A DNA stretch of 64,000 nucleotides from Selaginella moellendorffii (GCF_000143415.4 NW_003314410.1:170115-234114); one strand, 5' to 3'. Shown: positions 10,421-46,386, counted from the stretch's first letter. Made by a program: numbers and translations. Notes: generated by a model from the letters alone, not told the origin.

Positions 10421-10447
10421 AGGGTTCTCGGAGATTCGAGGCAAAGC

Positions 10448-10665: not shown

Positions 10666-10739
10666 GAATGCGATCCGAGAGGGAGAGAAACTAGGGTCGA
10701 TCCGTCCGTGAGAGAGGAAAGAAAGGACAGAGGCCATCG

Positions 10740-14928: not shown

Positions 14929-15064
14929 CAAACAAGTTGTTTTCTCTTTTTTTTTTTGTTGTAATCCGGCCTGCCAACAGCAACAAAGAAGAGCCACAGT
15001 AATTTACATTCTCCACTCTACCAGTTATTCCCTCGCTCTGGTAGATTTCTCTTGCGCTCAATGC

Positions 15065-18042: not shown

Positions 18043-18116
18043 TTCCATTGCCGGGATTTGAACCCGGGTCGCCTGGGTGAAAGCCAGGTATCCTGACCGG
18101 ACTAGACGACAATGGA
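18043..18116 (-). tRNA. tRNA-Glu(UUC)
   Basis: Reverse complement TCCATTGTCGTCTAGTCCGGTCAGGATACCTGGCTTTCACCCAGGCGACCCGGGTTCAAATCCCGGCAATGGAA: paired acceptor stem, TTC anticodon loop, T-arm GGTTCAAATCC. Confidence 0.93.
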
Positions 18117-18299
18117 TTTATGAAATATTGCCCAGTTTATTTCATTCCACGGGCTCTTGGAACTTTGAAAAAAAATTTCTTGCTTGTTAAGAAAGGAATC
18201 GCGAATGAGAAGACTTGAGAGAGCGTACCTGGTATTTTATGATGCATTCGGAGAGATGGAGCTTTCCAGTCCAATCTGATCGAAAGAAAGAGAATGCTT

Positions 18300-19227: not shown

Positions 19228-20278
19228 AATCTTTCGCACCCTCGTATGCCCTAGCCTGCCACGTCGGCAGCTTAAGTGGCGCCACATATACCTCCAGCTG
19301 GCATACCGGAAGGCTGGCGTGTCTCTACCAAAGATGGTAAATTCCAAATCTACCCCTTTTGGAATGTTAAGAAAGGCAAAGTGAAAAGCGATTATTACCA
19401 ACCATGTATGGACTTTAGTGGTTGTTTTGTGGCCGCTCCTTTAAGCCAATGCAACCTAAGGTGGGCTGGGTAACTGAGCCTGTGTGACTACTTATGACCA
19501 AGGACTTTTGACCGGAATTCCATCCAAATGGTGGTGGTGTAGAAGAATAACGAAGAAAAAAATCGAGTTTGCGTATGACGCATGCAAAGGAAAGAGATTG
19601 AGAGGCAAAGAAAAGAAAGGTAAAGAAAGTGAGCAGCGCATTCAAGCTCTTTCAAGTTGGTTGGGAAGGAAGGTAGGGAGGGCTTTGCATTCACTGTCCT
19701 CTCCTGGAGAAGCGAGCGAAGAGCAGCGATCCTCGAGAGCGCGAGAGCGAGCGATCGATTGACTAGGAAGAGTCTTGGTTTTCTTTTTAAGCGCGACTAT
19801 TTGCAATCACTGATCCCTGATAGCGATGGAGGAGCTGCGAGGTTGAAGAGCGAGCGAGCAGCGCGGGCCGGGGTGTCAATTTCGTGGTTGGCTCGCCAAA
19901 TTTCTTCCCACATAAATCCGCGGGTCGGTTTCGTCGATTCGGGTGGATCGTGTGGCAACATCAGGGGGAGTGCGCGGTTTGTCTGGAATTGGGGTAGATT
20001 TTGGAAAGGATTGATCACCAAGAACGAGGGAAAGAACTCGATGAGGGCAAAGAGGGCGTTAAGAGTAAGAGACACACCGAGGCTGTAGCGATCATGAGCG
20101 TTTTGGCGAGCAAGAAAGCGTTTTGGCGTGGGGAATTCGCGAAATTGGGCATGGTGGTCGTGTGATATGATCGAGGAGCAGCTGCCCAAGAAGAGATCTG
20201 AGCTTCTTTGCATGTGATTCCAAGCAGGAAAACGCAAAGAAGAGGGGTGAATCCTTTTCTTTCTCTTCCTTCTTCCCG

Positions 20279-23299: not shown

Positions 23300-23485
23300 T
23301 GACCAGATTGAGGCTTTTGAAAATATCAAGTTTTTCGTGTTTGGGCGGGTTGGTTTCTGGTAGAGTTTATCACGGATCTGCTTAGTTCCTGGCTCTGTGT
23401 TATTTGGTTATGAGAGTCGGGTAGCTTTTTGTGAGCTTTGCTAGTAGTCGAAACTCTTTTGCTTGCTCTGCATCTTAACAGGAAG
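23300..23485 (+). pseudogene. Decayed 3' remnant of the aminotransferase (last exons), downstream of MTPSL copy 1
   Basis: agagtttatcacggatct..tagttcctggctc..ttggttatgaga..gtagctttttg..atcttaacag aligns by eye with 45130-45320. Confidence 0.75.
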
Positions 23486-23516
23486 CTTTATGTTTTATTT
23501 TTCATGGCCTTTTCAT

Positions 23517-24623
23517 TCAGACTTGCAGATGGGGATGAGTTGGTTTGTACTCGGGGAGTATGATAGTCTGCGTATCATGAAACAACCAAGTCCCACTGAA
23601 TGGCTCTCCTGTTAGAAATGGATTATCAACACCGTGGTACCGAGCTGTGAGGTAGTGCCAACGTAGATTTCCAGGGATGAATGCCGGAATCGCCCTAAGG
23701 TACGCCAGAAAGTCGTGGTTGCCAGATTCCATCGCTTTCCTCGTCAGGATCTCGAGGTAATACATGAATTCTTGTTCTTTTTCCTGAATCATGGCGTTCG
23801 CCTTATCGACTGCCTGCTGAACAGAGCGAACTGTGTGGTCCGTGAAGAGCAAGAGAAAAATTATGTTCTTGAAAGTTTTCTTCCTCAGCTCCTTTGGGAA
23901 TGAAAAGATGTCGTTCACCAGCCACATATGATCAAACATGGCATCTATCGCCCGCAGGTACTCCTCGCTTTCGAGATCCTTGTCTCTCAGCTCGACTCCC
24001 AGGCACATCTGCGTGAAGTTAAGCATCGGCTTGACAATGAAGTCCTCCCGGCGATGCACAGCGTAAGACTCTTTCGTGAACTCCTCTTCGTCGACTTTGG
24101 CCGAGTAGCAGCCAACAAATTTCCTGTACGAGACGAGCAGCCGCTGGAAGAGGAGCGGCGACATGAGCTTCCGCAGATCTGGGACGAGCTCGGCTTGGGC
24201 GACGAGCACGGGCTTGTTGGGAACTTGGGCGATGGATCTTTGACCGGAGGCAAGGCTCATGTAAGCTTCCAGGATCTCGTCCCGCTGCGAAGGCTCCTCG
24301 TCGACAGCATCGTCGAGAATGGTGATGAGCCAGGTGTACTTGGCGGCCGCTAGAGCGTGCCTGGAGTCGCCCCAAGGCACAACGAAGGTGCCGTAGAGTG
24401 GCGTCCTCCACTGGGTGAAGCATTTCTTCTCTGCAGCGGCATTGGTGGCATTGATCTTGAGGAAGCGAAAGGCCCAATCGTTCGCCTGTCTGGAGACGGA
24501 GGCGTAGTCTGGGTGGCACTGCAATGGTAGCGAGCAGCGGATTTGAGGCAAGTAGATGCTCTTGCAGGCGAGGAGCTGCTCCAGAATTTGGAGACGATAG
24601 ATAGAAGGCGCGGCCATTATCAT
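23517..24623 (-). CDS. MTPSL: Microbial terpene synthase-like protein (MTPSL), copy 1, intronless, intact
   Basis: 368-aa single-domain class I synthase: DDAVD (DDxxD), sensor Arg in HRRED, NDIFSFPKE (NSE/DTE), ARYH. The true start may be Met3 (24617). Confidence 0.93.
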   Translation of the reverse strand: MIMAAPSIYRLQILEQLLACKSIYLPQIRCSLPLQCHPDYASVSRQANDWAFRFLKINATNAAAEKKCFTQWRTPLYGTFVVPWGDSRHALAAAKYTWLITILDDAVDEEPSQRDEILEAYMSLASGQRSIAQVPNKPVLVAQAELVPDLRKLMSPLLFQRLLVSYRKFVGCYSAKVDEEEFTKESYAVHRREDFIVKPMLNFTQMCLGVELRDKDLESEEYLRAIDAMFDHMWLVNDIFSFPKELRKKTFKNIIFLLLFTDHTVRSVQQAVDKANAMIQEKEQEFMYYLEILTRKAMESGNHDFLAYLRAIPAFIPGNLRWHYLTARYHGVDNPFLTGEPFSGTWLFHDTQTIILPEYKPTHPHLQV

Positions 24624-24797
24624 TCACTCTGGAGAACCTCTATTGAGGCCATCTCTTAAACTATTGAGGTGTGAACAGCGAGATAAGAGCCCATTAGGAT
24701 GAGGATGAATAGCTGTTAGTATGCTGTTTCGGCCTGGCGTGTTATTCGCAAACCGATGTAGCGTGAAAAAGTCCGTACTGCACAATATTGCGTCCGC

Positions 24798-24803
24798 CAC
24801 GTG
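24798..24803. promoter_or_regulatory. G-box (CACGTG) ~180 bp upstream of MTPSL copy 1; same at 32667-32672 for copy 2
   Basis: gcCACGTGg in both copies; function untested. Confidence 0.35.
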
Positions 24804-24829
24804 GTGACATTCATTCGGCCACCATAGTT

Positions 24830-27800
24830 ATGTTGCTATTATGGACATCCGATGGGCACCCAATGTGATGGTTTCAATGGTCATATTTTGCACATCCCAC
24901 CTGTCATTTTTGAGGTGAGGACTGCCTCTCGTTGGATAGGTTGCCATGGTGCAGTTAGTATAAAAGCAATAACAAAAGTGATTCACAATTGAAACAGCTA
25001 GATGGTTATATTTTCTTTTGATGACAAGATTTATAAGGAGGTTTTGACATATAATATATACAGTCAAGTGTAATAAACATGAGGAAGTTTCTATTGTCAA
25101 TTTTTTATTATAAATAATGACATTTTTTTGCTTGAGAATTTTGTTAGGTCTCATGGACGAGCAAGAAAGGATAAATGGACAAAACAATGGATTACTTGAC
25201 ATCTTATTTACAAATTTAAAAGCCAACATTATACAAATATATGAGGTTTGTTGATGTAAATTGGAGGGGTATATACAATAGAATACCACTATTAGAGGTA
25301 TTTCATCATGTTTGCACTAATATTGCCATGTAAAGGTACTACATGGGAATTATGGGAATTATACATTATTCAAGCTGTTGAATAGCAAAATACTGTTTTA
25401 TCTGATGTCAAATTCGTGAAGTTTTTTAGTTATATATGACCCTATAAAACTCACACAAAGCTACTTGTATAGGATTCAGAGGTGGATATATACCTCTTGC
25501 TTTTAATAAATAAGCTTCATATCTTTAACCAAGAAGTGAATCATATCTTCACTACTAGAGTTGTGCTTCACCAACTCTATATAGACCAATATCTCTTTAG
25601 TTAATAGATCACTCCTATATAAAAGCCCATTGAAGGAAGTACTATCCACAAAAGCAAGACATTTATCCAAGCTCATAATCAAGTTCTTTAATCTCTAAGC
25701 ATGTTTTAACTTTGCTAAGCCAAATGCATACCAACATATATCTAGCTTTGCAAGGCTAAACAAATACCACCAAAACTAGCAAATACAAATAAAAGGGCCA
25801 AAAATATATAAATTAAAGTATGATTTAACTTTATTTCAACTATATAATAACACCTGGATCTCTTTATTAAGGATATAAGGGTTTATAGTATAGTGATACT
25901 AATACAATTTTAATCTTGGGAGACTCTTATCTTATTTTAATTATAATAATCTCTTATTAACTTTTTATTCTATTTTAATTAAGAACAGTTAATTTCAGTC
26001 TAATTTAATTTTAAAATTCTTATGAGGTTATAATTTAGAGGAAGCCATTTTTGCCCCAATTTTATGTTCTCTCACTATCTCCACACAACATGGTAAGGCT
26101 AAGTGATCTTAGTCCCATGCAAACCATATTTTCATTGATTTTTTTTTTTGTTCCAAGCATGTGGGGTGAAAATGACAAGAAAAGGGGAAACCCAAAAAAA
26201 GGATCTTTCAAATGTGGGTAATGCTTTATTTTTGTTGTGCCTTAGCACAAAATAATGATCATAGAGATTGTTTATATTTCATTCCCATCCTTCTTCTAGC
26301 TGGAGCTCTTCTTTCACACCTGTTCAACATAATCAATGCAAGCAATAATAGTAGCAATAACAATAATAATATATGCAACTTATCACAGTTCAAATCCCTT
26401 GACTGAGTGCTAACACATGCATCGGCTCATATACTCTTGGACCATCTTCTGTAAAACCACACAACATCATTGAACACACACCAATATAATCAATTCTAAC
26501 TCCCAAAGGGATGCATGTGAGTGGTTAGCTTTTTGTGTTTCCTATTTACAATGCTCACTCTTTAGTTGTTTTTCCTAGTCACAACTCAATACATTTGGCA
26601 TATTAGTGTCTAGACAATGCTTAGTAAGTAGATTTTCTGGAAGCTTTCAACACTGCACTCTCTTGACAGGCTCTTTAACATCTTCTATAGATCCAATGAT
26701 AGATTGCTATCAAAAGGTGGTAGCTTGTGTATTGCCACATGAGCCATCAATAATGTTTATTTCTTTGAAGTTTTTCATAGCTAAAATATCTCTATGCAGA
26801 CTCTATCACTTGTTATGTTCAACAACATGCAACAAACAACCTCCAGTCTCTAGCACCCCAAAGTGGCAAAAAACGTAGTAGATCCCCTCATGGAAACTCT
26901 TCCAAGGATGGAGTACTTTAGCCATTAACAATAATGCTGTGCTCTAAGTGTATCACTATTTTAATTGCATACTATGAACATAGCTTAGGGAACCTTGCAT
27001 GAAGATTACAAAGATTATATATATATTGGAGTGCTTGGAATGGGGAGGCACTTATTGGATAAATACTTTTATTTTAGAGATGGCACAATATGGTATTTAT
27101 GACATGCTCCAACATCCTCCACACAACCTACTGGTCAATCAATTTACACTACTTGGTGCCTTTGTGAAGCAGTCTTGCAAGATGCAAAGAACATCAGTGC
27201 ATGTTAATGTAAGCGATTAAATTTTCCATTCTACTTTAATCACTTAACCACGCCTCTAACCACTTGGAGGAGTCTCATTCACAACCTCCTTAAGTCTAAT
27301 TCAGGACTTGGGACTTGCTAGTCCCGAGAATGGCATCCATGCCACTCAACTTTTGCACTTGGTCCAAGTGCTCGACGTGTCCAGTCCCAAGACCGACACC
27401 CAAAGGTACCACTGACATATCGGCTTGTTACACTAAGGCCATGCCCATTCACCTTTGCCACATTAGTGGTCCAATACCACTTACATCACAATCCTGTCTC
27501 TCCAAGACTGGGCCGTCCGTCCATGAGTGGTCATCCCAGATCCACTCTTTAGCATCCTTAGAATGCCCATAACCATGGGGAATAGCCTTCCCCAACATCC
27601 CTTTGTCAGTTCTTACCAAGTCCCTTTTTCATCCATGGCCATGTTCACCAACACTGCCACTAGATCATGGCTCGCAGGCCCGGCCACTAAGTCCCATTAT
27701 CCTCTGGGACTTCCTCACCATGTGACTGTATCCGTAGTCACTACACTAGAGGACTGCTCCTCCTCCTTACACCCATTTGGGACTTCGGGACAACATTTCG

Positions 27801-30800
27801 GAACACCGTGGGCTTACGCGAGCCCCGTGGGTACTCTCCCCACCTTCCGCATTTACATGCTCTAGCCATGGGCTTAGAGCGAGGTTCCATTGAGCCACAC
27901 TTGGTATCCAAGTAGGTAGTGCCACCCACACTTGGACTGGGAGCATTGGCCAGTCAATCTCCCGGGGGAACTAGAGTTGGCTCTTGAACACTTCACCAAG
28001 CTACCTTGCTTGTCGGTCCGTATTCACTCTAGTCTTGGACTTCCCAGTGGTCAATTCATCACCCAACACTGGGTCTAGCCTTCCTGGGCCAAACTAACCT
28101 TTCCTGGCCAAACTGGCTCCACTGCAGTCCTCCCCCTTACTATACTTTTGGAGCTCACCAAACCCCCCAGGGTCTGGGAGACAAACGCTTTGGGCTTTCA
28201 CCCTCTCAGACTTGAACTCGGACTCGAACTTGGACTCGGACTCGGACTTGGACTTGGACTTGGGCTTAGTCTCGGCCTCGGCCTCGGTCTCGGTCTCGGT
28301 CCCGGTCTCGGTCTCGATCTCGGTCCCGGTCTCGGTCTCGGTTTCGGTCCCGGTCTCGGTCTCGGTCTCGGTTTTGACTTTGGACTCCATCTCGGGTCCA
28401 TCTCAGACTCCATCTCGGGTCCATCTCGGACTCCATCTCGAGTCCATCTCGAACTCCATCTTGGTCCATCTTAGACTCCATCTCGGACTCCACCTCGGAC
28501 TCCATCTCGGACTCCACCTCGGACTCCACCTCGGACTCCATCTCGGACTCCGTCTCGGTCCATCTCGGACTGCAACTCGGGTCCATCTCGGACACTTCCA
28601 CGTGTCATGTGTTGGTCATGTTGGGTCCCTTTTTGGAGCCTCGCTTATTGCTTGCTTCGTGCTTGTTCCTTAAGCACTTTGTTGGGAGTTCCACTCCCGC
28701 TCTCGACCTTTCAAGTCGGAGCTTTTAGTCCAAACATGTTATGCTCGTTTGGCTTTCGCTTCGGCCACTACCACGTGGCACCCTTCCGGCTCCACTTTGG
28801 GGTCTAGGGATTTTGTGTCTCATAATTAAGACTCTCAAGTTTGGAGAGAGCTCTCTAAAGTCTTACTTTTGGAATGTTATGATTGCATGGGCTACAATTT
28901 GCAACAAAAACAATAGAAAACCATCTTCGATCATTTATCTATACAACACAAGCTAACACTTGACACACACACTACCAAAAACAAGCATATACCTCTTGGC
29001 AGTGAGAGAAAAATGCCAATGGTATTTTTTTTTCTTTGTAAAATTTATCATCATATTAATGTTGTCATTTTTTTTTATAAGTGCATATACCAGTGGCAAA
29101 ATGCCATCTCTAACACCAGGCAATGTTGCCAATAAAATTCTATAAGAAGAAGATATTAGCTTGCAAGATATTCAACACCAATAATGCAATAAGGAGGTGG
29201 TTATTGATGTTGGCAAGGACAATATAAAAGATGAAGAAGATAACTTGTATCTAGATGAAGAACTAAAAGAAATAAAAAACATACCAAATTTCTAGCACTT
29301 GTTCCAATATCTAATTCATGTAAAAAATGTTGTTTTATATTGCCTCCATCCTTGATACTTCTCCATAACTCAACTGCTTTTCATTTGTGATAGTGAAGAT
29401 AATCGAACAGAAGAAGATTCATCATATCTGGTTCCAATTTATGATAAAAGTGACATGTAACCACTTACGGATTTAATATATCTTCTAGAGGCTAAAGATG
29501 TGCCAAAGTAAGCTTTTCATATGTTTTGTTGACCAATTGTGTATATAAGTTTGAATGTATACAAGACAATTGGTTGCAAGTGTGTAAGCAGTATATACAA
29601 AAAGTTTAGGTAGTGTCACAAGCAAACATAAGATTCCAATTGCTACAAGTAGAGGAGATTAGTACTATTGAACATGCAACAAGAGTTATGGAGATCACTA
29701 CCTTGGAATCCCATGATGACAACATGATACCCATGGTAATATGGTTGAAGACTAAAGTCCTTGGGTAGTATGGAATGGGAGATGTAAAGCATAGTGGAGA
29801 TAGTGGCTTACAAGGAGCTCTTTTCTATATTGGGTTCTCAATGAAAATACAATATTATATTAGCAAGAGTGGCAATGCAAACAAATATTGTGGAGGCTGA
29901 CTGTAAAGCTCTTTTCTGTGATGGAGGTATTAATATTGTAGTGGAAAACTCATGTGATCCAAATGATTATGCTATTATACAGACTACAAGACATTGGTAC
30001 TTGGAAAGATTGTAGTATAACAATACAGGCATTTTCAACTAAACAAGGATATCATAGACAAGCTATTAAGGTTTTTTAAAGTTCTGGAACAAAGTATAGC
30101 CAATTTTTATATTTCCTAGTGGAGCACATAGTGTTATGTCCATACCAAGAGGCTAGAAGAAAACTTAAGTTGGAGTTGGTGAATGTATATATTCTATATA
30201 CTTTTGCTTCAATTAAAAGTCTTTTATTTCCTAGATAGCAGTAAATAATAAGTTCTCATGCCTGAAGCCTATTTTCAAACTAGATTGTCATACTCTTTAA
30301 TTCTCATGTGATATTGCTACGGCAATTGTGTGGGAAATGAGAACCATTTATGCCAGAGGCCTATGACAAAATGCATTCCATGGGACATTGTGGCAAGTAC
30401 CAAGAAATGTGAATAAAACTTGATTTGCTTTTCCAAGAAAATCAAGTTTGTGTGTTTGCCGATGGTGCCTCATATTGGCATCCAAACAAACTCATCTTAG
30501 ATGACTTTACAAGAAGCTGATAAAAAAATGGTATGAATTACAAGTTGAATATATTAAGATCTTTTAGCTATACTTTTTTATAGGCCATGTTTATTAGTTA
30601 GCTATTATTCAAATGTTTTGAAGCTCAAGCATAAATCTCTTGATTGTGTAGTATAACTACACTAACAATGGTTGCAAAGGAGATCCTAGATCCATGCAAC
30701 AGAAGGCTATTATGAGATAACCTTTGTGAAATGAACTTGAAGTTATGTGCCCCTTGAATTTAGGATGGAGTGAACATGGTGTAAGCCATTGTAAGTCTCT

Positions 30801-31015
30801 AAATTATAGATGAAAAGAAGGTAGTGAAAGAGATATTAAAAAACTTGGCAATCACTCATCGCTATTAAGTTTTGAAGATGGCTTTAAAGGACTTTAATGG
30901 CAATTTATTATAAAGCATATAAGAATTGTCTAAATTGAAATGAAAACTTATAGAAGTTTTGAGTATGACTCTTCCAAATAACTAAAGTAGAATAAAAAAA
31001 TCCAGTTGCTTACAA
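24830..31015. repeat. AT-rich CpG-depleted spacer duplicated at 32700-37560 and partly at 40010-41200; probably decayed TE-derived sequence
   Basis: Collinear similarity between the spacers is directly visible; ORF fragments recur (e.g. MKITKI.YILECLEWGG at 26999 and 35145). Confidence 0.8.
27208..28824 (-). mobile_element. Solo LTR of the same family as 6017-7959, with an imperfect 5-bp TSD
   Basis: TGTAAGCGA…TGTCTCATA flanked by GTTAA / ATTAA; the empty site catGTTGAgact is present in sister spacers at 35349-35353 and 41082-41086. Confidence 0.9.
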
Positions 31016-31109
31016 ATAATAAATATTTTGTAAACTTACAAAATTAGCGTGGCTTCTTCTTTTCATACTTTTCTTATTTGAAATATTCATCAATATTCAA
31101 AAGGCTTAC

Positions 31110-31355
31110 CGTTGACCAGATTGAGGCCTTTGCACTTTCATGAAAAAATCAAGTTCTTCATGTTTGCAAGGTTATTGCAAAACTATGTAAGCTTGGTTTC
31201 CTTACTGGGTTGGTTTCAGGTAGAGTTTATCATGGATCTGCTGGAGTTGCACTAGTTCCTGGCTCTGTGTTCTTTGGTTATGAGAATGGGTAGCTTTTTG
31301 TGAACTTTGGTAGTAGCCGAAACTCTTTTGCTTGGTATGCATCTTAACAGGAAAC
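31110..31355 (+). pseudogene. 3' remnant of the aminotransferase downstream of MTPSL copy 2
   Basis: tttgcaaggtt..gcaaaactatgtaagc and gctggagttgcactagttcctggctc match 45040-45185. Confidence 0.8.
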
Positions 31356-31385
31356 TATATGTTTTATTTTTCATGGCCTTTTCAT

Positions 31386-32484
31386 TCAGACTTGCAGATG
31401 GGGATGAGTTGGTTTGTACTCGGGGAGTATGATAGTCTGCGTATCATGAAACAACCAAGTCCCACTGAATGGCTCTCCTGTTACAAATGGATTATCAACA
31501 CCGTGGTACCGAGCTGTGAGGTAGTGCCAACGTAGGTTTCCAGGGATGAATGCCGGAATCGCTCTAAGGTACGCCAGAAAGTCGTGGTTGCCAGATTCCA
31601 TCGCTTTCCTCGTCAGGATCTCGTGGTAATACATGAATTCTTGTTCTTTTTCCTGAACCATGGCATTCGCCTTATCGACTGCCTGCTGAACAGAGCGAAC
31701 GGTGTGGTCCGTGAAGAGCAAGAGAAAAATTATGTTCTTGAAAGTTTTCTTCCTCAGCTCCTTTGGGAATGAAAAGATGTCGTTCACCAGCCAGATGTGA
31801 TCAAACATGGCATCTATCGCCCGGAGGTACTCCTCGCTTTCCAGATCCTTGTCTCTCAGCTTCACTCCGAGGCACATCTGCGTGAAGTTAAGCATCGGCT
31901 TGACAACGAAGTCCTCCCGGCGATGCACAGCGTTAAGACTCTTTCGTGAACTCCTCTTCGTCCGAGTAGCAGCCAACAAATTTCCTGTACGAGACGAGCA
32001 GCCGCTGGAAGAGGAGCGGCGACATAAGCTTCCGCAGATCTGGGACGAGCTCGGCTTGGGCGACGAGCACGGGCTTGTTGGGAACTTGGGCGATGGATCT
32101 TTGACCGGAGGCAAGGCTCATGTAAGCTTCCAGGATCTCGTTCCGCTGCGAAGGCTCCTCGTCGACAGCATCGTCGAGAATGGTGATGAGCCAGGTGTAC
32201 TTGGCGGCCGCTAGAGCGTGCCTGGAGTCGCCCCAAGGCACAACGAAGGTGCCGTAGAGTGGCGTCCTCCACTGGGTGAAGCATTTCTTCTCTGCAGCGG
32301 CATTGGTGGCATTGATCTTGAGGAAGCGAAAGGCCCAATCGTTCGCCTGTCTGGAGACGGAGGCGTAGTCTGGGTGGCACTGCAATGGCAGCGAGCAGCG
32401 GATTTGAGGCAAGTAGATGCTCTTGCAGGCGAGGAGCTGCTCCAGAATTTGGGGACGATAGATAGAAGGCGCGGCCATTATCAT
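31386..32484 (-). pseudogene. MTPSL copy 2, frameshifted
   Basis: 9-bp deletion (loses AKV) plus a 1-nt insertion at ~31933 (gcgttaagac vs gcgtaagac) giving a stop after 183 aa; the rest continues in another frame. Confidence 0.85.
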
Positions 32485-35400: not shown

Positions 35401-37659
35401 TTATGATTGCATGGGTTACAATTTGCAACAAAAGCAATAAAAAACCATTTTCGGTCATTTATCTATACAACACAAGCTAACACTTGACACACACACTACC
35501 AAAAACAAACATATACGTCTTGGCAGTGAGAGAAAAATGCTTATGGTTTTTTTTTTCTTTGTAGAATTTATCATTATATTAATATTGTCATTTCTTTCTT
35601 ATAAGTGTATATACCAGTGGCAAGATGCCATCTCTAACACCAGGCAATGTTTTCAATCAAATTCTGTAAGAAGAAGATATTAGCTTGCAAGATATTCAAC
35701 ACCAATAATGCAATGAGGAGGTGGTTATTGATGTTGGCAAGGACAATATAAAAGATGAAAAAGATAACTCGTATCTAGATGAGAACTAAAAGAAATAAAA
35801 AACATACTAGAATTTCCACCATTTATTCTAATATCTAGTTCATGTAAAAAATGTTGTTTTCTATTGCTTCCATCCTTGATACTTTTCCATAAGTCAACTA
35901 CTTCTCATTTCTGATAGTGAAGATGATCGAACAGAAGAAGATTCATCACATTTGGTTCTAGTTTATGATAAGAGTGACATGCAACCATTTACAGATTTAA
36001 TATATCTTCTAGAGGCTAAAGATGTACCAAAGTAAGTTTTTCATATGTTTTGTTGTATGTCTTTCTAACAATTGTATATATAGGTTTAAATGTATACAAG
36101 ACAATTGGTTGCAAGTGTGTAAGTAGGACATACAAAAAGTTTAGATAGTGTCACAAGCGAACATAAGATTTTAATTGCTATAAGTAGAGGAGATTAGTGC
36201 TATTGAACATGCAACAAGAGTTATGGAGATCATTACCTTGGAATCCCATGATGACAACATAATAGCCATGGTAATATGGTTGAAAACTAAGGTCCTTGGG
36301 TAGTATGGAATGGGAGATGTAGAGCATAGTGGAGATAGTGGCTTACAAGGAGCTCTTTTCTATATTGGGTTCTCAATAAAAATGCAATATTATCTTAGCA
36401 AGAGTGATAATGCAAACAAATATTGTGGAGGCTGACTATAAAGCTCTTTTCTGTGATGGAGGTATTAATGTTGTGGTGGAAAACTCATGTGATCCAAATG
36501 ATTATGCTATTATATAGACTGCAAGACATTGGTACTTGGAAAGATTGTAGTATAACAATACAGGCATTTTCAACTAAACAAGGATATCATAGACAAGCTA
36601 TTAAGGTTTTTTAAAGTTCTGGAACAAAGTATAACCAATGTTTATATTTCCTAGTGGAGCATATAGTGTTGTGTTCATACCAAGAGGCTAGGAGAAAACT
36701 TAAGTTGGAGTTGGTGAATGTATATATTCTATATACTTTTGCTTCAATTAAAAGTCTTTTATTTCCTAGATAGTGGTAAATAATAAGTTCTCACACCTGA
36801 AGCCTCTTTTAAAACTAGATTGTCATACTCCTCAATTTTAAGTGAAGTATGCATGTGATATTGCTATAGCAATTGTGTGGGAAATGAGAACCATTTATGC
36901 CAAATGCCTACGACAAAATGCATTCCATGGGACATTATAGCAAATACCAAGAAATGTGAATAACACTTGATTTGCTTTTCCAAGAAAGTCAAGTTTGTGT
37001 GTTTGCCGATGATGCCTCATATTGGCATCCAAACAAACTCCAATCTCAGATGACTTTACAAGAAGCTGATCAAAAAATGGTATGAATTATAAGTTGAATA
37101 TATTAAGATCTTTTAGCTATACTTTTTTATAGGCCATGTTTATTAGTTGGCTATTGTTCAAATGTTTTGAAGCTCAAACATAAATCTCTTGATTGTGTAA
37201 TATAACTACACTAACAATGGTTGCAAAGAAGATTCTAGATCCATGCAACAAAAAGCTATTATGAGATAGCCTTTGTGAAATGAACTTGAAGTTGTGTGCT
37301 CCTTGAATTTAGGATAGAGTGAACATGGTGTAAGCCATTGTAAGTCTCCAAATTATAGATGAAAAGAAGGTAGTGAAGGAGATACTAGAAAACTTGGTAA
37401 TCACTTGTCGCTACTAAGTTTTGAAGATGGCTTTACAGGACTTTAATGGCAATTTATTATAAAGCATATAGCAATTGAAATGAAAACTTATAGAGGTTTT
37501 GAGTATAACTCTTCCAAATGGTTAAATAACTAAAGTAGAATAAAAAAATCCAGTTGCTTACAAATAATAAATAATTTTGTAAACTTACAAAGTTAGCGTG
37601 GCTTCTTCTTTTCATACTTTTCTTATTTGAAATATTCATCAATATTCAAAAGGCTTACC

Positions 37660-37875
37660 GTTGACAAGATTGAGGCCTTTGCACTTTCATGAGTTCTTCG
37701 TGTTTGCAAGGTTATTGCAAAGCGATGTAAGCTCGGTTTCCTTACTGGGTCATGGATCTGCTGGAGTTGCACTAGTTCCTGGCTCTGTGTTCTTTGGTTA
37801 TGAGAGTCGGGTAGCTTTTTGTGAACTTTGGTAGTAGCGGAAACTCTTTTGCTTGCTCTGCATCTTAACAGGAAA
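37660..37875 (+). pseudogene. 3' remnant of the aminotransferase downstream of MTPSL copy 3
   Basis: Same remnant blocks as 31110-31355. Confidence 0.8.
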
Positions 37876-37906
37876 CTTTATGTTTTATTTTTCATGGCCT
37901 TTTCAT

Positions 37907-39013
37907 TCAAACTTGCAGATGGGGATGAGTTGGTTTGTACTCGGGGAGTATGATAGTCTGCGTATCATGAAACAACCAAGTCCCACTGAATGGCTCTCCT
38001 GTTACAAATGGATTATCAACACCGTGGTACCGAGCTGTGAGGTAGTGCCAACGTAGGTTTCCAGGGATGAATGCCGGAATCGCTCTAAGGTACGCCAGAA
38101 AGTCGTGGTTGCCAGATTCCATCGCTTTCCTCGTCAGGATCTCGTGGTAATACATGAATTCTTGTTCTTTTTCCTGAATCATGGCGTTCGCCTTATCGAC
38201 TGCCTGTTGAACAGAGCGAACGGTGTGGTCCGTGAAGAGCAAGAGAAAAATTATGTTCTTGAAAGTTTTCTTCCTCAGCTCCTTTGGGAATGAAAAGATG
38301 TCGTTCACCAGCCAGATGTGATCAAACATGGCATCTATCGCCCGGAGGTACTCCTCGCTTTCCAGATCCTTGTCTCTCAGCTCCACTCCGAGGCACATCT
38401 GCGTGAAGTTAAGCATCGGCTTGACAACGAAGTCCTCCCGGCGATGCACAGCGTAAGACTCTTTCGTGAACTCCTCTTCGTCGACTTTGGCCGAGTAGCA
38501 GCCAACAAATTTCCTGTACGAGACGAGCAGCCGCTGGAAGAGGAGCGGCGACATAAGCTTCCGCAGATCTGGGACGAGCTCGGCTTGGGCGACGAGCACG
38601 GGCTTATTGGGAACTTGGGCGATGGATCTTTGACCGGAGGCAAGGCTCATGTAAGCTTCCAGGATCTCGTCCCGCTGCGAAGGCTCCTCGTCGACAGCAT
38701 CGTCGAGAATGGTGATGAGCCAGGTGTACTTGGCGGCCGCTAGAGCGTGCCTGGAGTCGCCCCAAGGCACAACAAAGGTGCCGTAGAGTGGCGTCCTGCA
38801 CTGGGTAAAGTATTTCTTATCGGCAGCGGCATTGGTGGCATTGATCTTGAGGAAGCGAAAGGCCCAATCGTTCGCCTGTTTGGAGACGGAGACGTAGTTT
38901 GGGTGGCACTGCAATGGCAGCGAGCAGCGAATTTGAGGCAAGTAGATGCTCTTGCAGGCGAGGAGCTGCTCCAGAATTTGGAGACGATAGATAGAAGGCG
39001 CGGCCATTATCAT
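37907..39013 (-). CDS. MTPSL: MTPSL copy 3, intronless, intact
   Basis: 368 aa; DDAVD, NDIFSFPKE and RY intact. Confidence 0.93.
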   Translation of the reverse strand: MIMAAPSIYRLQILEQLLACKSIYLPQIRCSLPLQCHPNYVSVSKQANDWAFRFLKINATNAAADKKYFTQCRTPLYGTFVVPWGDSRHALAAAKYTWLITILDDAVDEEPSQRDEILEAYMSLASGQRSIAQVPNKPVLVAQAELVPDLRKLMSPLLFQRLLVSYRKFVGCYSAKVDEEEFTKESYAVHRREDFVVKPMLNFTQMCLGVELRDKDLESEEYLRAIDAMFDHIWLVNDIFSFPKELRKKTFKNIIFLLLFTDHTVRSVQQAVDKANAMIQEKEQEFMYYHEILTRKAMESGNHDFLAYLRAIPAFIPGNLRWHYLTARYHGVDNPFVTGEPFSGTWLFHDTQTIILPEYKPTHPHLQV

Positions 39014-39190
39014 TCACTCTGGAGAAGAAAGAGCTAAGGGCCCTGCTTTATTGAGGCCTTGTGACATTTGATCTCCCTATTGAGGGGTGAACAGCGAGAT
39101 AAACGTGACGAAGAGCTGTTGTATAGCTGTTAGAGACCTGTAGGTCGTTAGTACGACTCCATGAACCTCATTAAATAACCACATCTTCTC

Positions 39191-39945
39191 ATGGAAGAGG
39201 AGCTAGCGCACAGGACACGGTCGTTCAAGCCGTCACCGATCCAGAAGCTCTCGCATCTCGCTCAGCAGCGCAATGCGATCAACTTAGCGGAAGGTAAAAC
39301 TGATATTCTCGGGTGTTTGTGTTCTAGCGGAGAGGTTTCCCAGGGTTTCCAGATTTCCCAGCTCCGCCAGAGGTGAAGGAGGCCGCAAGGGATGCCATTG
39401 GAGCAGACTTCAATCAGTACAGGTGGTTTGGGAGCTCGTTTTGCATGGTTTCTTACATTTCTTTTTCACAAGGCATGTACAAGGTGTTTGCAACAAAGTG
39501 GCCGAGCATTTTGAGCATTTCCAGGGTGTGAAGGTTGACTCCAAGTCCGACATTGTGCTTTGCTGCGGTCAATCGGAAGCTCTCGCTGCCGTGACTTTCG
39601 CTAGTGAGTTCGAACAGATCTTCATTTTCACTCTTGGTCCTCTTCTTTTAGTTGTTGATCGTGACGACGAAGTGATTCTTTTGGAACCGGTCTATGAGAC
39701 GTACGAATCTTGCATCATAATGGCTGGAGGCAAGCCAGTTGAGCCAACTGGCTGATGAATCTTCATCGCTAATATACTTTCCTTCTCTGTTGCCATACAG
39801 GTTTTCGTGCCTTTAACGCCTCTGCTGTGGACGTTGGATTCAGAGAAGCTCAAAAGGAGCATCACCTCTAGAACCAAGGCGATTGTGATTAACAGGTATC
39901 TTGAGTAGCTTTCCTTGTGTCCTGGACTCGGTCAGCCCTCAATCT
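39191..39945 (+). pseudogene. 5' half of the PLP aminotransferase, truncated
   Basis: Near-identical to 43659-44445 (15-bp deletion near the start) but ends at the SPHNPTG exon; lacks the PLP-Lys exon. Confidence 0.85.
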
Positions 39946-41204
39946 GACAATCTGACTGGAGCGATATATGGCATTGTAGCCGTACACTTGGCTCTCACAC
40001 TTTTATTTTATTTTAATATAGTCTAATTTCATTTTATTATGACAATAATCTAGGGTTAGGGCCACCCCTGTTTAGGGTTTGGTGTAATTATGATTACACT
40101 TTTGCCTTTTATTCTCCTGCTATCTTCATCATGTAGGTGTTCTAGCATTTTCATTGCTTTTCTTTTGTTTTAGGCACATGGGTTAAAAATGATGAAAAGA
40201 GGGGAAACCTAAAGGAGGGATCCTCCAAATGTGGGTAATGCTCTATTGTTGTTATGCCTTAGCACATGAGCAAGTTTAGAGAATGATTATAAAAAACCCT
40301 CTCACCCATATACAGTCTACATCCCATTCCCATCCTTCTTCTAATTGGAGGTTTTCTTTCACACTTGTCCAACATGATTAATGTGAGCAACAGTAGCAAC
40401 AACAATAATAACAATATACACAATTTCAAATCTCTTGATTGAATACCAACACACGCATTGGCTTGCATACTCCTAGACCATCTTCTTTTTTAAGGCCACA
40501 TAACATCACCAAGCACACACCAACATGGTCAACTCCAACTCTCAAAAGGATGTATGTGAGTGGTTAACTTTTTGTGTTTCCTATTTGCAATGCTCACTTT
40601 TTAATGGTTTTTTTTAGTCACAATTTGATACATTTGCCACACTAGTGTCTAGACAACACTTGACAAGTAGATTTTCTAGCCCCTAGCACTACACTCTCTT
40701 GATGGGCTCCTTAACATCTTTTGAAGGTCTAATGATGGATTGCTATTGAGAGGTGGTAGCTTATGCATTGCCAACTGAGCCATCAGTAAGATTTATTTCT
40801 TTGAAGTTTTTCATAGCTAAAATGTCTCCATTCAGACTCTAGGTGGCTAACATTAAGAACCTTGCGTGAAGATTATAAAGATCATGGATATCAAGTTTAA
40901 GCTATCAGAGTGTTTAGAATAGAGTAGTGTGTACTAGATAAATGCTTTTATTCAAGAGATGACACAATATGATATTTGTGATATGCTCCAATGTCCTTCA
41001 CACAACTTACTGGCCAATTTATTTACACCACTTGATGCTTTTGTGAAGTAGTTTTGCAAGATATAAGGAATATCAATGCATGTTGAGACTCAAGTTTGGA
41101 GAGAGCTCTTTGAAACTTTGCTTTTGGAATACTATGATTACATAGGCTATAATTTGCAAAAGTGAAATAGAAAACTATCTTTAGTTATCTATTTATACAA
41201 TACA

Positions 41205-42021
41205 TAGTAAGAGAGGTTTATGGAATTAGTTTGGCCAAAAAAGGCTAATGTGACCAAGGAAAGCTACACTTAATATAACCCATGTGAATATAAATAGACG
41301 AGTGGGGTAATTTAGTGACGTGTTCAAAAATTAATTGCTCCCCCCAAAAGATGAAATGATTGATGCTTGCAATACTTACTTGGATACCTTATGTAGCTCA
41401 TTAGAACCTAGTTTTAGTTACATGGCTAGAGCACTCTAGTGGTGGAAGGTGGGGGGAGTACCCATGAAACTCATGTTATGCCACAATGAAACTCATGTTA
41501 TGTCACAATGTTTCAAAATGTCATTCTAAAATCCTAGATTATAGAATGGAAAAGGAGTAATTTTTTTGCTTAGTGATTAAAAATATGATTACATAGTGAA
41601 GAAGTTCTAAAAGTTAATGGAATTTAATGGATGGGTCTTTAAACCCTAGACCAGTGGTGGTGTTAATAAGCATTGCCATAAATGAAAATAAACTTGGTGG
41701 GGATCGAAAAATGAATATTAGAGAATGGTGTTCTTTATGTCTTGAGACATCTTAAAGATGCTAAGATATAGTCATTGGATGACTACTCATAAATAGATGG
41801 CCTAGTTTGGAAAAATGAGATTGTGGTACAAATGGTCTTGGAAATATTAAAAATGTATATAACCTTCATGTAGGATTTTACATGTGAAACACTTAGACCA
41901 AGTGTGAGGTCAATATAATCGTGAGAACACATATAAAGCTAGCAAATGCCCTAAATTGAGGTTAAATGGTCAAAAACATAATTAAATGACTGAACTAGAA
42001 TGCAAAATTTATTCATTTATA
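41205..42021 (+). mobile_element. Old diverged LTR fragment, same family, opposite orientation
   Basis: 41745-41830 matches the reverse complement of 6290-6375, 41220-41270 that of ~6875-6925, and 41986-42021 matches the LTR terminus. Confidence 0.7.
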
Positions 42022-42069
42022 AATAATAAATAATTTTGTGTGGCAATATTCAAAAAACTTACAATTAAC

Positions 42070-42297
42070 TAGATTGAGGCCTTTTCACTTTCATGAAAAA
42101 ATCAAGGTTTTCATGTTTGCAAGGTTAATGCAGAACAATGTAAGCTCAATTTCCTTACTGAGTTGGTTTCAAGTAGAGTTTATCATGGACCTGCTGGAGT
42201 TGCAGTCTGTGTTCTTTGGTTATGAGAATCAGGTAGCTTTTTGTGAACTTTGGTAGTAGCCGAAACTCTTTTGCTTGCTCTGCATCTTAACAGGAAA
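42070..42297 (+). pseudogene. 3' remnant of the aminotransferase downstream of MTPSL copy 4
   Basis: Same remnant blocks (tttgcaaggtt, gtagagtttatcatgga, gctggagttgca, ttggttatgagaatc). Confidence 0.75.
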
Positions 42298-42328
42298 CTT
42301 TATGTTTTATTTTTCATGGCCTTTTCAT

Positions 42329-43435
42329 TCAAACTTGCAGATGGGGATGAGTTGGTTTGTACTCGGGGAGTATGATAGTCTGTGTATCATGAAACAACCA
42401 AGTCCCACTGAATGGCTCTCCTGTTACAAATGGATTATCAACACCGTGGTACCGAGCTGCGAGGTAGTGCCAACGTAGATTTCCAGGGATGAAAGCCGGA
42501 ATCGCTCTAAGGTACGCCAGAAAGTCGTGGTTGCCAGATTCCATCGCTTTCCTCGTCAGGATCTCGTGGTAATACATGAATTCTTGTTCTTTTTCCTGAA
42601 TCATGGCGTTCGCCTTATCAACTGCCTGTTGAACAGAGCGAACGGTGTGGTCCGTGAAGAGCAAGAGAAAAATTATGTTCTTGAAAGTTTTCTTCCTCAG
42701 CTCCTTTGGGAATGAAAAGATGTCGTTCACCAGCCACATATGATCAAACATGGCATCTATTGCCCGGAGGTACTCCTCGCTTTCCAGATCCTTGTCTCTC
42801 AGCTCGACTCCCAGGCACATCTGCGTGAAGTTAAGCATCGGCTTGACAACGTAGTCCTCCCGGCGATGCACAGCGTAAGACTCTTTCGTGAACTCCTCTT
42901 CGTCGACTTTGGCCGAGTAGCAGCCAACAAATTTCCTGTACGAGACGAGCAGCCGCTGGAAGAGGAGCGGCGACATGAGCTTCCGCAGATCCGGGACGAG
43001 CTCGGCTTGGGCGACGAGCACGGGTTTGTTGGGAACTTGGGCGATGGATCTTTGACCGGAGGCAAGGCTCATGTAAGCTTCCAGGATCTCGTCCCGCTGC
43101 GAAGGCTCCTCGTCGACAGCATCGTCGAGAATGGTGATGAGCCAGGTGTACTTGGCGGCCGCTAGAGCGTGCCTGGAGTTGCCCCAAGGCACAACAAAGG
43201 TGCCGTAGAGTGGCATCCTCCACTGGGTGAAGTATTTCTTATCGGCAGCGGCATTGGTGGCATTGATCTTGAGGAAGCGAAAGGCCCAATCGTTCGCCTG
43301 TCTGGAGACGGAGGCGTAGTCTGGGTGGCACTGCAATGGCAGCGAGCAGCGAATTTGAGGCAAGTAGATGCTCTTGCAGGCGAGGAGCTGCTCAAGAATT
43401 TGGGGACGACAGATAGAAGGCGCGGCCATTCGCAT
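42329..43435 (-). CDS. MTPSL: MTPSL copy 4, intronless, intact
   Basis: 368 aa; motifs intact; RREDY variant. Confidence 0.93.
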   Translation of the reverse strand: MRMAAPSICRPQILEQLLACKSIYLPQIRCSLPLQCHPDYASVSRQANDWAFRFLKINATNAAADKKYFTQWRMPLYGTFVVPWGNSRHALAAAKYTWLITILDDAVDEEPSQRDEILEAYMSLASGQRSIAQVPNKPVLVAQAELVPDLRKLMSPLLFQRLLVSYRKFVGCYSAKVDEEEFTKESYAVHRREDYVVKPMLNFTQMCLGVELRDKDLESEEYLRAIDAMFDHMWLVNDIFSFPKELRKKTFKNIIFLLLFTDHTVRSVQQAVDKANAMIQEKEQEFMYYHEILTRKAMESGNHDFLAYLRAIPAFIPGNLRWHYLAARYHGVDNPFVTGEPFSGTWLFHDTQTIILPEYKPTHPHLQV

Positions 43436-43482
43436 TCACTCTGGAGAAGAACGAGCTTAAGCCCCTCCTTTATTGAGGCCTA

Positions 43483-43570
43483 GTGACATTTGATCTCTCT
43501 ATTGAGGTGTGACCAGCGAGATAAACGTGACATTTGATCTCTCTATTGAGGTGTGACCAGCGATATAAAC
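43483..43570. repeat. 44-bp direct tandem duplication in the MTPSL4/aminotransferase intergenic region
   Basis: gtgacatttgatctctctattgaggtgtgaccagcga(g/t)ataaac occurs twice; single copy at ~39061-39104. Confidence 0.95.
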
Positions 43571-43658
43571 GTGAGGAAGAGCTCTTGTATAGCTGTTAGA
43601 GGCCTGTAGGTCCTGTTAGTACGACTCCATGAACCTCATTAAATAACCACATCTTCTC

Positions 43659-45310
43659 ATGGAAGAGGAGGGTTTTTGCCGCTGGCTAGCGCACAGGACA
43701 CGGTCGTTCAAGCCGTCACCGATACAGAAGCTCTCGCATCTCGCTCAGCAGCGCAATGCGATCAATCTAGCGGAAGGTAAAACTGATATTCTCGGGTGTT
43801 TGTGTTCTAGCGGAGAGGTTTTCCAGGGTTTCCAGATTTCCCAGCTCCGCCAGAGGTGAAGGAGGCCGCAAGGGATGCCATTGGAGCAGACTTCAATCAG
43901 TACAGGTGGTTTGGGAGCTCGTTTTGCATGGTTTCTTACATTTCTTTTTCACAAGGCATGTACAAGGTGTTTGCGACAAAGTGGCCGAGCATTTTGAGCA
44001 TTTCCAGGGTGTGAAGGTTGACTCCAAGTCCGGCATTGTGCTTTGCTGCGGTCAATCGGAAGCTCTCGCTGCCGCGACTTTCGCTGGTGAGTTCGAACAG
44101 ATCTTCTTTTTCACTCTTGGTCCTCTTCTTTTAGTTGTTGATCGTGACGACGAAGTGATTCTCTTGGAACCGGTCTATGAGACGTACGAATCTTGCATCA
44201 TAATGGCTGGAGGCAAGCCAGTTAAGCCAACTGGCTGATGAATCTTCATTGCTAATATACTTTCCTTCTCTGTTGCCATGCAGGTTTTCGTGCCTTTAAC
44301 GCCTCCGCTGTGGACGTTGGATTCAGAGAAGCTCGAAAGGAGCATCACCTCTAGAACCAAGGCGATTGTGATTAACAGGTATCTCGAGTGGCTTTCCTTG
44401 TGTTCTTGACTCGGTATGCGATTGTGGCAGCCCTCACAATCCGACTGGAAAGGTTTTTGCGATAGAGGAACTTAAAGAGATAGCGCAGCTCTGTTGTAAG
44501 CACGATCTACTTGCTATAACAGACGAGGTAGTAGAGAAAGGATCTTTCCATGGGTTACGCATTTTTAACAGGTGTACGAGCACATAGTGTTTCCTGGAGC
44601 AACACACGTGAGTATTGCATCACTGCCAGGCATGCTCGAGAGGACGATAGTCACCTCTTCGATTTCAAAGACATACTCGGTGACTGGTATGGATGTCAAG
44701 ATGCGTAATTCTTGCTGCTATTCTACCTATTCCGTGAAGGGTGGCGTGTTGGCTGGGCTATAGCACCGATTCAGCTGGCGTCTGCCATAAGAAACATACA
44801 CGTCAAGCTTACGGATTCCGCTCCTTCACCTTTCCAAGTGGCGGCTTTGGTCGCGTTGCAGAGCAGTCACGATTTCTATGCAAAGCTCAAAAATGTAAGA
44901 TTCATGAAAATTTTGTTTTGTTTCCGACAGTCTTTGTACTTTGTGTGCAGTGCTACCGGGAAAGAGGCGAATACATAAAGAAAGTCCTAGTTGAAGCTGG
45001 TTTTGAGGTACCGTTTGCGGCTCAGGGATCGTTTTTCGTCTTTGCAAGGTTGCCGGATGCTATGAAGCAAAACGATGTAAGCCCCCGGATTTTCACTCAG
45101 CTCAGTTCTTTGAATTGTTTTGTTCAGATAGAGTTTGTCACGGATCTAATAAACCGCGCTGGAGTTGCACTAGTTCCTGGCTCCGCTTTCTTTCGATCGA
45201 ACGAACTTGGTTATGAGAATCGCTACGTGAGAGTAGCTTTTTGCAAAGAGATGGCAACTTTGGTAGCAGCCGAAAGAGCATTGAAGAAGGCAAAACCTTT
45301 TGCTTTGTAA
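43659..45310 (+). CDS. PLP-dependent class I/II aminotransferase (kynurenine aminotransferase / glutamine transaminase K / YbdL-like), multi-exon
   Basis: AINLAEG|FPDFPAP, FNQY, CCGQSEA, EPVYETY, INSPHNPTG, DE|VYEH, SSISKTYSVTG|WRVG (PLP Lys), GVALVPGSAF, YVRVAFCK. Confidence 0.92.
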
Positions 45311-45663
45311 TCTTAACAGAAGACTATCTAATTCTTCCTGCTTGCTTGCACACTCTTTCTTGAATGACTTACTGTTATAGCATTCAAACTTGATGTGCTG
45401 CTACCATCATTCCTTTTTGCCAAAATTTCTTAAAGAAGGAATCAATCTCCATAAGAAGTACTAAATGGATCTCAACTGACAAACGAATCATCTTGTTCGA
45501 ATATAAAAGAATACTTTTCTTTTTAAAACTAAAGAGAAAATAAGTTCTTTGATGATGTTATAAAAATTGTAGTCAATAGCCATTGTACAATTTATTGATA
45601 AAATCAGAGTATATATTAAATGTGTTACTAAATATATAGAGCATCCAAATGACTTAATAAAAA

Positions 45664-46386
45664 GTGAGGTAGTGACAATGTAGATTTCCAGGGATAAAAG
45701 CCGGAATCGCTCGAAGGTACGCAAGAAAGTCGCGGTTGCCAAATTCCATCGCGTTCTTCTTCAACATTGACTTATGGATCCAAACATCTTCTCTTTCATG
45801 AACTCCTCTTCGTCGACTTTGGCAGAGTAACAGCCGACAAATTTCCTGTACGAGGCGAGGAGCCTCTGGAAGAGGAGCGGCGACATGAGCTCCCGCAGAT
45901 CCGCGACGAGCTCGGCCTGGGCGACGAGCACGGGCTTGTTGGGAACTTGGGCGATGGATCTTTCACCGGAGGCGAGGCTCAGATGAGTTTTTTATATGTT
46001 TTACTAATAGCCACGATCTAGTCTTATAGATCAAACACTTGTATGCCAACATGTTTTGGACCCGTCCACGTTTTTGGTGTAGGCTTGTCTCGCCGCAAGA
46101 ACAGTATCGTCGAGAATGGTGATGAGCCAGGCGGGCCTGGAGTCGCTCCAAGGCACGGTGAAGGTGCCAAAGAGTGGGATCCTCCATTGAGTGAAGGCTT
46201 TCTTATCGGCATTGGTGGTGATTTTGAGGAAGCCAAGTGCCCAATCGTTTGCCTGTTTGGAGACGGAGACATAGTCTGGGTGTCCACTGCAATGGCAGCG
46301 AGCAGCGAATTTGAGGCAAGTAGAATACAGGCGTGGAGCTGCTCCAGAATATGGAGACGATAGAGAGAAGGCACGGCCATTATCAT
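45664..46386 (-). pseudogene. MTPSL copy 5, heavily decayed
   Basis: MIMAVPSLYRLHILEQL, HPDYVSVSKQANDWA, WLITILDDTV; frameshifts, an insertion at ~45985-46075, a large internal deletion, and a 3' fragment at 45664-45757. Confidence 0.88.

Follow-up and report, generated by a model that had tools for sequence, protein, structure and literature searches.

The genome of Selaginella moellendorffii contains a locus in which microbial-type terpene synthase genes (MTPSL) recur in company with pieces of an aminotransferase (AT) gene, and this raises the question of whether the two genes were amplified together as partners in a biosynthetic pathway. The locus occupies positions 23300-46386 of a 64,000-nucleotide stretch (NW_003314410.1:170115-234114), here called the window, in which the 21,093 nucleotides (nt) from 21386 to 42478 are 100% identical to scaffold GL377714.1 of assembly GCA_000143415.2 (scaffold coordinate = window position + 170,114). 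A preliminary description of this sequence had proposed a co-amplified module of two alternating genes, explained either as a nascent locus for terpenoids, possibly nitrogen-containing, or as amplification of the synthase with the AT as a passenger. The present analysis supports the latter explanation. With a probability of about 0.8, the locus is a young tandem array of MTPSL genes, polymorphic in copy number, that grew by unequal recombination beside and around a single conserved AT of the KAT/GTK/YbdL type, and represents an ordinary expansion rather than a two-enzyme pathway.

All of the elements previously listed are present in the order given, as judged by open reading frames (ORFs), tblastn and self-BLAST. 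From left to right, the window contains a kinase gene; an AT 3' relic (23360-23435, decayed, AT residues ~335-374) at the left edge of the array, followed by MTPSL1 (23517-24623); a second relic (31136-31308) and the pseudogene MTPSL2psi (31386-32484); a third relic (37694-37825), MTPSL3 (37907-39013), a copy of the MTPSL-AT intergenic region (39014-39190) and a copy of AT exons 1-5 that ends in intron 5 (39191-39932); a spacer; and finally a fourth relic (42089-42247), MTPSL4 (42329-43435), the MTPSL4-AT intergenic region (43436-43658), the intact AT gene (43659-45310) and MTPSL5psi (45663-46386). All MTPSL copies are on the minus strand, and the AT and all of its pieces are on the plus strand. 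Of the five synthase copies, three are intact, one is a pseudogene of recent date and one an old wreck, and the AT is represented by one intact gene, one 5' half-copy (exons 1-5) and four 3' relics of the last two exons; the contrast of three intact synthases with one intact AT thus stands, on the evidence of ORFs and spliced RNA.

Self-BLAST of the window revealed repeated segments of 1.2-3.7 kb at 92-97% identity, far beyond chance, the leftmost homology beginning at 23347. The array units are 4.4-7.9 kb long, 92-97% identical, and carry private insertions. One recent duplication of 2.3 kb (37640-39932 and 42044-44415, 94-95% identical) comprises a synthase, the promoter and AT exons 1-5, whereas homology of units 1-2 to units 3-4 ends 13 bp upstream of the synthase start codon, save for an echo of the intergenic motif of 26-78 bp. 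The repeats of the proposed alternating module are therefore real, but a simple alternation is not what they form: the intact AT lies head-to-head with MTPSL4 (start codons 223 bp apart) and tail-to-tail with MTPSL5psi, and the 3' pieces are 76-173 bp long rather than halves of genes.

MTPSL1, MTPSL3 and MTPSL4 each encode 368 amino acids (aa) without introns and are 97% identical as proteins. All three match Pfam PF19086 (E 3e-23 to 5e-24, residues 95-284), with the plant-type PF03936 below its cut-off, and the metal-binding motifs DDAVD (104-108) and NDIFSFPKE (237-245), by which the synthases would ionise geranyl diphosphate (GPP) or farnesyl diphosphate (FPP), are invariant among them. A single alpha domain of the PF19086 type, a length of about 350-370 aa, the absence of a beta and a gamma domain, uninterrupted ORFs and origin in a non-seed plant are all as in MTPSLs, and this identification, made at the outset, is confirmed by the domain, by the motifs and by the allelism of MTPSL1 with a published family member. 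GenBank starts MTPSL1 at 24617, two codons later, giving 366 aa, and the 366/368-aa ORF of the window is 96% identical to SELMODRAFT_405826 of S. moellendorffii. Because the ratio of non-synonymous to synonymous substitution rates (dN/dS) is 0.11-0.46 among the three intact copies and the two alleles of the other haplotype (hapB, described below), the intact synthases are under purifying selection.

The two remaining copies are disrupted to very different degrees. MTPSL2psi is 98.3-98.4% identical as DNA to the neighbouring copies, and has lost 9 nt through a deletion and acquired a 1-nt insertion (TCTTAC to TCTTAAC) that places a TAA at about codon 187. Its GenBank model of 323 aa (SELMODRAFT_431290, EFJ05814) removes 121 nt as an artificial intron, thereby exchanging about 60 core residues for 17 out-of-frame residues. 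MTPSL5psi is 84% identical, with 14 insertions or deletions including one deletion of 276 nt.

The synthases can be matched to enzymes already in the literature. Some of the products reported for SmMTPSL enzymes can also come from phosphatases in E. coli extracts. Table S2 of Zhao et al. 2021 gives SmMTPSL5 as XP_002964134 (PMC7826640), which is SELMODRAFT_405827, the other-haplotype allele of MTPSL1. The same study lists SmMTPSL46 (323 aa) and SmMTPSL47 (366 aa, XP_002993175) with accessions two apart (PMC7826640). By length and order of accessions, rather than by comparison of sequences, SmMTPSL46 is probably the model of MTPSL2psi, the sole 323-aa MTPSL model at the locus, and SmMTPSL47 is, on the same basis, probably one of the intact copies of the window. 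SmMTPSL5, SmMTPSL46 and SmMTPSL47 were all active in vitro on GPP and FPP as mono- and sesquiterpene synthases, the reported products being hydrocarbons and alcohols (geraniol, linalool, farnesol, germacrene and similar), and SmMTPSL5 was cloned from plant material (PMC7826640). The activity reported for SmMTPSL46 deserves caution because the model corresponds to a frameshifted copy in which core residues are replaced by out-of-frame ones. The array shares with the published SmMTPSL family (Li et al. 2012 PNAS, as cited in PMC6779861) the species, the genes themselves, the single-alpha-domain protein of ~366 aa, the DDxxD and NSE/DTE motifs and the presence of 0-1 introns; thus, in every testable respect these synthase genes are known members of that family. 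In the accounts consulted (PMC7826640, and PMC6779861 as the source for the earlier work) neither the array nor the head-to-head position of the AT is described, nor are the AT relics and the difference in copy number between haplotypes.

The S. moellendorffii assembly is taken here to hold both haplotypes, so scaffold GL377569.1, which is collinear with the flanks of the window (98.9% identity on the right, 97.3% on the left), was treated as the other haplotype. The order on hapB is AT, MTPSL (SELMODRAFT_405826), spacer, long terminal repeat (LTR) retrotransposon, MTPSL (SELMODRAFT_405827, i.e. SmMTPSL5) and kinase; the AT 5' copy, equivalents of MTPSL2psi and MTPSL3, and MTPSL5psi are all missing from it. 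MTPSL1 pairs with SELMODRAFT_405827 (98.4% nt identity) and MTPSL4 with SELMODRAFT_405826 (98.1%), and the AT is intact on hapB too, where all ten exons recur and 13 nt and 7 residues differ. Thus, the MTPSL array is copy-number polymorphic within one plant. The presence of just two MTPSL copies on the other haplotype and the head-to-head arrangement of MTPSL4 and AT at 223 bp are the new details of this locus.

Other observations concern hapB itself. The retrotransposon between its two MTPSL genes (15067-22415 in the hapB locus numbering) is a Ty3/gypsy chromovirus that appears intact and has no counterpart in the window. Its 918-bp LTRs share 98.3% identity, and its pol ORF of 1228 aa encodes reverse transcriptase, RNase H, integrase and a chromodomain. 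A weak MTPSL-like match in the hapB-specific segment was discarded as spurious, being located inside this pol ORF. The allelic identity of the MTPSL4-AT segment (window 41870-45524, hapB locus 7931-11601) is only 95.5%, compared with 98.9% in the right flank, and the synonymous divergence (dS) of the MTPSL4 allele pair is 0.064, as high as between paralogues, which suggests either old alleles or exchange between copies.

The AT fragments were examined for signs of how they arose. Two deletions, one of five residues (RSNEL) and one of three (RYV), are common to the relics beside MTPSL1, MTPSL3 and MTPSL4, the tblastn match of the MTPSL1 relic covering 23376-23435; in the relic beside MTPSL2psi (match at 31240-31287) the five-residue gap is seen and the match ends ahead of the second site. 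The best preserved relic is the third, which retains residues 320-374 at 54% identity (tblastn E 1.5e-6). The distance from relic to synthase stop codon is 82 nt for MTPSL1, MTPSL3 and MTPSL4 and about 80 nt for MTPSL2psi. Because of these common deletions and this near-constant offset, the four 3' relics descend from one already-decayed relic that was duplicated together with the synthase. In units 1 and 2 the spacers show no trace of AT exons 1-8, even with the E cut-off raised to 20. The repeated loss of AT copies that had been proposed is accordingly not borne out, given the common deletions, the constant offset and the missing exons. The 5' copy is of a different kind: its exons 1-5 were located by tblastn with the AT model at 39191-39893, 15 nt are missing from its exon 1, it lacks the exon of the catalytic lysine, and its homology to the intact gene (43527-44449 against 39061-39960, 93.8%) stops in intron 5 at about 39932-39960. 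The AT fragments are border debris of duplication units.

The intact AT (394 aa) was modelled by hand, its exons being short, as ten exons on the plus strand at 43659-43776, 43827-43905, 43956-44086, 44135-44220, 44284-44378, 44431-44527, 44572-44686, 44740-44894, 44951-45076 and 45128-45310, with GT..AG at every intron. Transcription was assessed from assembled contigs matching at 98% identity or more in four runs of four studies (X1, X2, X3 and X7). The AT exons are covered and correctly spliced in all four, and all nine introns are confirmed by spliced contigs, which indicates that the runs are indeed RNA; the zero depth of the 2.2-kb spacer (39980-42179) in every run likewise argues against DNA contamination. 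Some of the contigs carry letters of the other allele in AT exons 8-9. The GenBank model of the gene, also of 394 aa, spans 39191-45310, starting in the truncated 5' duplicate and jumping over MTPSL4. The four RNA runs do not show the joint from 39893 to 44431 that it demands, but do show the compact model's junction of exons 1 and 2. The compact gene at 43659-45310, rather than the GenBank one, is therefore the RNA-supported model.

Comparison with known proteins placed the AT in the land-plant KAT/glutamine-transaminase-K/YbdL group of class I aminotransferases. The GenBank product carries PF00155, and exon-wise NCBIfam matches are collinear over positions 38-387 of the class I aminotransferase profile, the best being PRK07777, PRK08912 and YbdL-type methionine aminotransferase; among solved structures, exons 8 and 10 match E. 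coli YbdL, Rv0858c, KAT I and Thermus glutamine aminotransferase. A 119-aa stretch free of stops, made up of exon 9, intron 9 and exon 10, was searched with HMMER; most matches were fragments and one was full-length (P0014), a pineapple protein named 'kynurenine--oxoglutarate transaminase', to which the AT model is 54.6% identical over residues 10-388 (379 residues). The orthologue set of this protein includes monocots, eudicots and basal angiosperms under the names KAT, YbdL, DapC-like and glutamine transaminase K. Against 118 seed-plant orthologues the AT has a mean identity of 57.7% (range 53-61%), and it keeps 117 of the 125 columns that are conserved in at least 98% of them (94%). Among the motifs kept are SPHNPTG (170), ITDEVY (199), SSISK (231) and RVAF (369), which presumably contribute the catalytic lysine and the pyridoxal phosphate (PLP)- and carboxylate-binding sites; the C-terminal arginine of RVAF is taken to be the carboxylate anchor.

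In Arabidopsis, the KAT/GTK enzyme At1g77670 is a glutamine transaminase that uses 2-oxo-4-methylthiobutanoate (KMTB) and completes the cycle of methionine salvage (PMC9806585), and its substrate profile matches that of YbdL (bioRxiv 10.1101/2024.03.19.585368). The AT resembles At1g77670 and YbdL in its fold-type I, class I PLP type, its length of ~394 aa and its set of motifs, and differs from them in having no obvious N-terminal extension and in a glycine, G92, where the family has aspartate. By orthology, its most likely role is the usual primary one, in which 2-oxo acids such as KMTB are transaminated at the expense of glutamine as part of methionine salvage. Thus, orthology and residue conservation largely favour a purely primary-metabolic aminotransferase, which the preliminary description had named as a finding that would speak against a module.

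From these features a history of the locus can be proposed. An old tandem duplication of a convergent pair, [AT -> <- MTPSL], would have come first, after which the left AT would have shrunk to a 3' relic and the right synthase would have decayed to MTPSL5psi (84% identity for the synthase, ~72% for the relic). Much later, the unit of relic plus synthase would have been re-copied (ORFs 97.2-98.4% identical, dS 0.06-0.075), and one recent copy, that of 2.3 kb, would also have taken the intergenic region with its promoter and AT exons 1-5. AT sequence would recur because the AT sits at both edges of the duplicated segment, with only two duplication events, one old and one recent, having involved it, and MTPSL4 and the AT would be neighbours with a common 223-bp region, not steps of one pathway. 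The locus resembles ordinary tandem arrays formed by unequal crossing-over in the close identity of its units, its private insertions of transposable elements, its young pseudogene and its haplotype-dependent copy number, and in that every unit contains pieces of the gene at the border; nothing essential is different.

Several points weigh against an ordinary expansion as the whole account. For the oldest events, the order given is reconstructed. This AT may not be the sole housekeeping copy in S. moellendorffii, and at residue 92 (exon 3, 43956-44086) the window allele has G where hapB and at least 98% of the 118 orthologues have D. RNA contigs indicate presence only and give no measure of co-expression. 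To the left of the array, at a distance of 8.5-14.5 kb, the plus strand carries two genes for BAHD acyltransferases, at 8986-10420 and 13374-15002 (PF02458, with E values as low as 4e-43). Finally, the 223-bp region common to MTPSL4 and the AT differs little between the haplotypes and was carried along in the duplication that gave MTPSL3 its flank, which could mean co-regulation.

The last point leads to a regulatory link without a metabolic one, in which an intronless synthase uses the bidirectional promoter of a constitutive housekeeping gene; this is compatible with the proposed expansion and is a tentative possibility, rather doubtful on present evidence. It would explain why the promoter-bearing copies (MTPSL3, MTPSL4 and SELMODRAFT_405826 of hapB) have kept AT-side sequence, and it fits the closeness of the two start codons and the conservation and copying of the region between them. 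The AT 5' copy beside MTPSL3 is transcribed in X3, with partial coverage in X1 (39580-39779), so the copied promoter fires, and MTPSL4 as well as the AT is present in contigs of three runs: the MTPSL4 ORF or a near-identical allele is covered in X1, X2 and X7, with 4, 8 and 17 mismatches per kb. In X3, however, no MTPSL4 contig was found at 98% identity or more, although the AT contigs of this run are the deepest. MTPSL1 and MTPSL2psi retain only about 13-100 bp of the intergenic region, and yet SmMTPSL5, the allele of MTPSL1, could be cloned from the plant (PMC7826640). A 44-bp motif of the region (43499-43599) is tandemly doubled beside MTPSL4 and on hapB, single beside MTPSL3, and echoed upstream of MTPSL1 (24661-24719) and MTPSL2psi (32511-32588).

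There is a far smaller chance that the locus is a nascent module in which the AT takes as substrate what the synthases make, once oxidised, or else provides for the synthases metabolically, to give nitrogen-containing terpenoids, with linkage and co-duplication under selection. In its favour are the physical linkage on both haplotypes, the promoter region common to MTPSL4 and the AT, the inclusion of AT sequence in two duplication events, the two BAHD acyltransferases within the same 40 kb, and G92, a non-conservative change at a near-invariant position. The genes called by GenBank at 13.5-53.4 kb encode a BAHD acyltransferase, CBP60-like, CbiX, a 710-aa kinase, the MTPSLs, the AT, ribosomal S18, inositol phosphatase and FtsH, and the BAHD genes are parted from the array by the CBP60-like, CbiX and kinase genes, in the same order on the other haplotype. 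Neither these called genes nor the large ORFs scanned beyond them include a P450, 2-ODD or SDR (intron-rich genes outside the span could be missed), in agreement with the lack of an oxidase noted previously; scaffold-oxidising or tailoring enzymes do not adjoin the synthases.

Resemblances to the plant terpenoid clusters (terpene synthase-cytochrome P450 pairs, and the steroidal glycoalkaloid cluster with GAME12) extend to a synthase adjoining another enzyme gene, local duplication and a common promoter region. Unlike in those clusters, the partner is not of a tailoring type, there is no oxidase, and the transaminase is of the class I KAT type rather than of the gamma-aminobutyrate transaminase (GABA-T) family, which differs from the class I aminotransferase family. 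The precedents in specialised metabolism are transaminases that introduce nitrogen into steroid or vanilloid aldehydes, namely GAME12/PGA4, Veratrum GABA-T1 and VAMT of the capsaicinoid pathway, each of which is a GABA-T-family member (PMC11666457). The AT here is a class I enzyme of alpha-amino acids and 2-oxo acids that retains nearly all of the invariant positions of its family; a single full AT accompanies three to four synthases, the other AT pieces being non-functional relics; the AT is transcribed where MTPSL4 is undetected (X3); and the hydrocarbons and alcohols reported for the synthases (PMC7826640) also speak against a module. MTPSL and AT are physically linked, but nothing ties the AT to terpenoid metabolism, and its family and conservation argue for primary metabolism. 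Among the papers searched, none links S. moellendorffii, a gene cluster, a terpene synthase and an aminotransferase. The proposal of a nascent N-terpenoid locus is thus not supported, in view of the missing oxidase and the primary-metabolism type of the AT. It is similarly improbable that the head-to-head pair is a selected functional unit, whether through recruitment of the AT to an oxidised terpenoid or a terpenoid-amino acid conjugate, or, more modestly, through capture of a bidirectional housekeeping promoter by a horizontally derived intronless synthase.

An artefact of assembly was also considered, in which the extra copies would be haplotype variants misplaced in tandem in the 2011 Sanger assembly. 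In its favour are the two collinear scaffolds of the locus, with flanks 97.3-98.9% identical and different copy numbers. It was rejected as having almost no likelihood: there is no N run inside the array, MTPSL2psi and MTPSL3 match the hapB copies at best at 98.0% and 97.7% and are thus distinct sequences, the units differ by private insertions, and RNA contigs match MTPSL4 at 99.2-99.6%. The expansion of a young MTPSL array around one conserved AT remains the preferred reading, and the only points worth following up are the head-to-head sharing of a promoter and the copy-number difference between haplotypes.

Other features of the window were noted in passing. A repeat element found by self-BLAST at 27205-28826, in unit 1 only, is dispersed and non-coding, being 78-80% like window positions 6017-7597 and 262-854, and its ORFs have no Pfam match. 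A fragment of an aldolase-II gene is present at 62.6-63.1 kb, and the sole N run of the window is an assembly gap of 851 N at 861-1711.

If the minority reading of a metabolic partnership were true, plant terpenoid clusters would be extended to lycophytes and to a new class of transaminase, and the locus would contain the first terpenoid-metabolic enzyme of the KAT type as well as the first cluster based on an MTPSL. As it stands, the value of the locus for annotation is that spliced RNA supports the AT model at 43659-45310 and not the GenBank one at 39191-45310, and that SmMTPSL46, if the probable match is correct, is a frameshifted copy with an artificial 121-nt intron. The fragments of the AT also illustrate that debris from a neighbouring gene can be mistaken for a co-amplified module. 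The locus is a worked example, rather than a discovery, of how the 48-member MTPSL family of S. moellendorffii expands, through short tandem units, recent pseudogenisation and differences in copy number between haplotypes.

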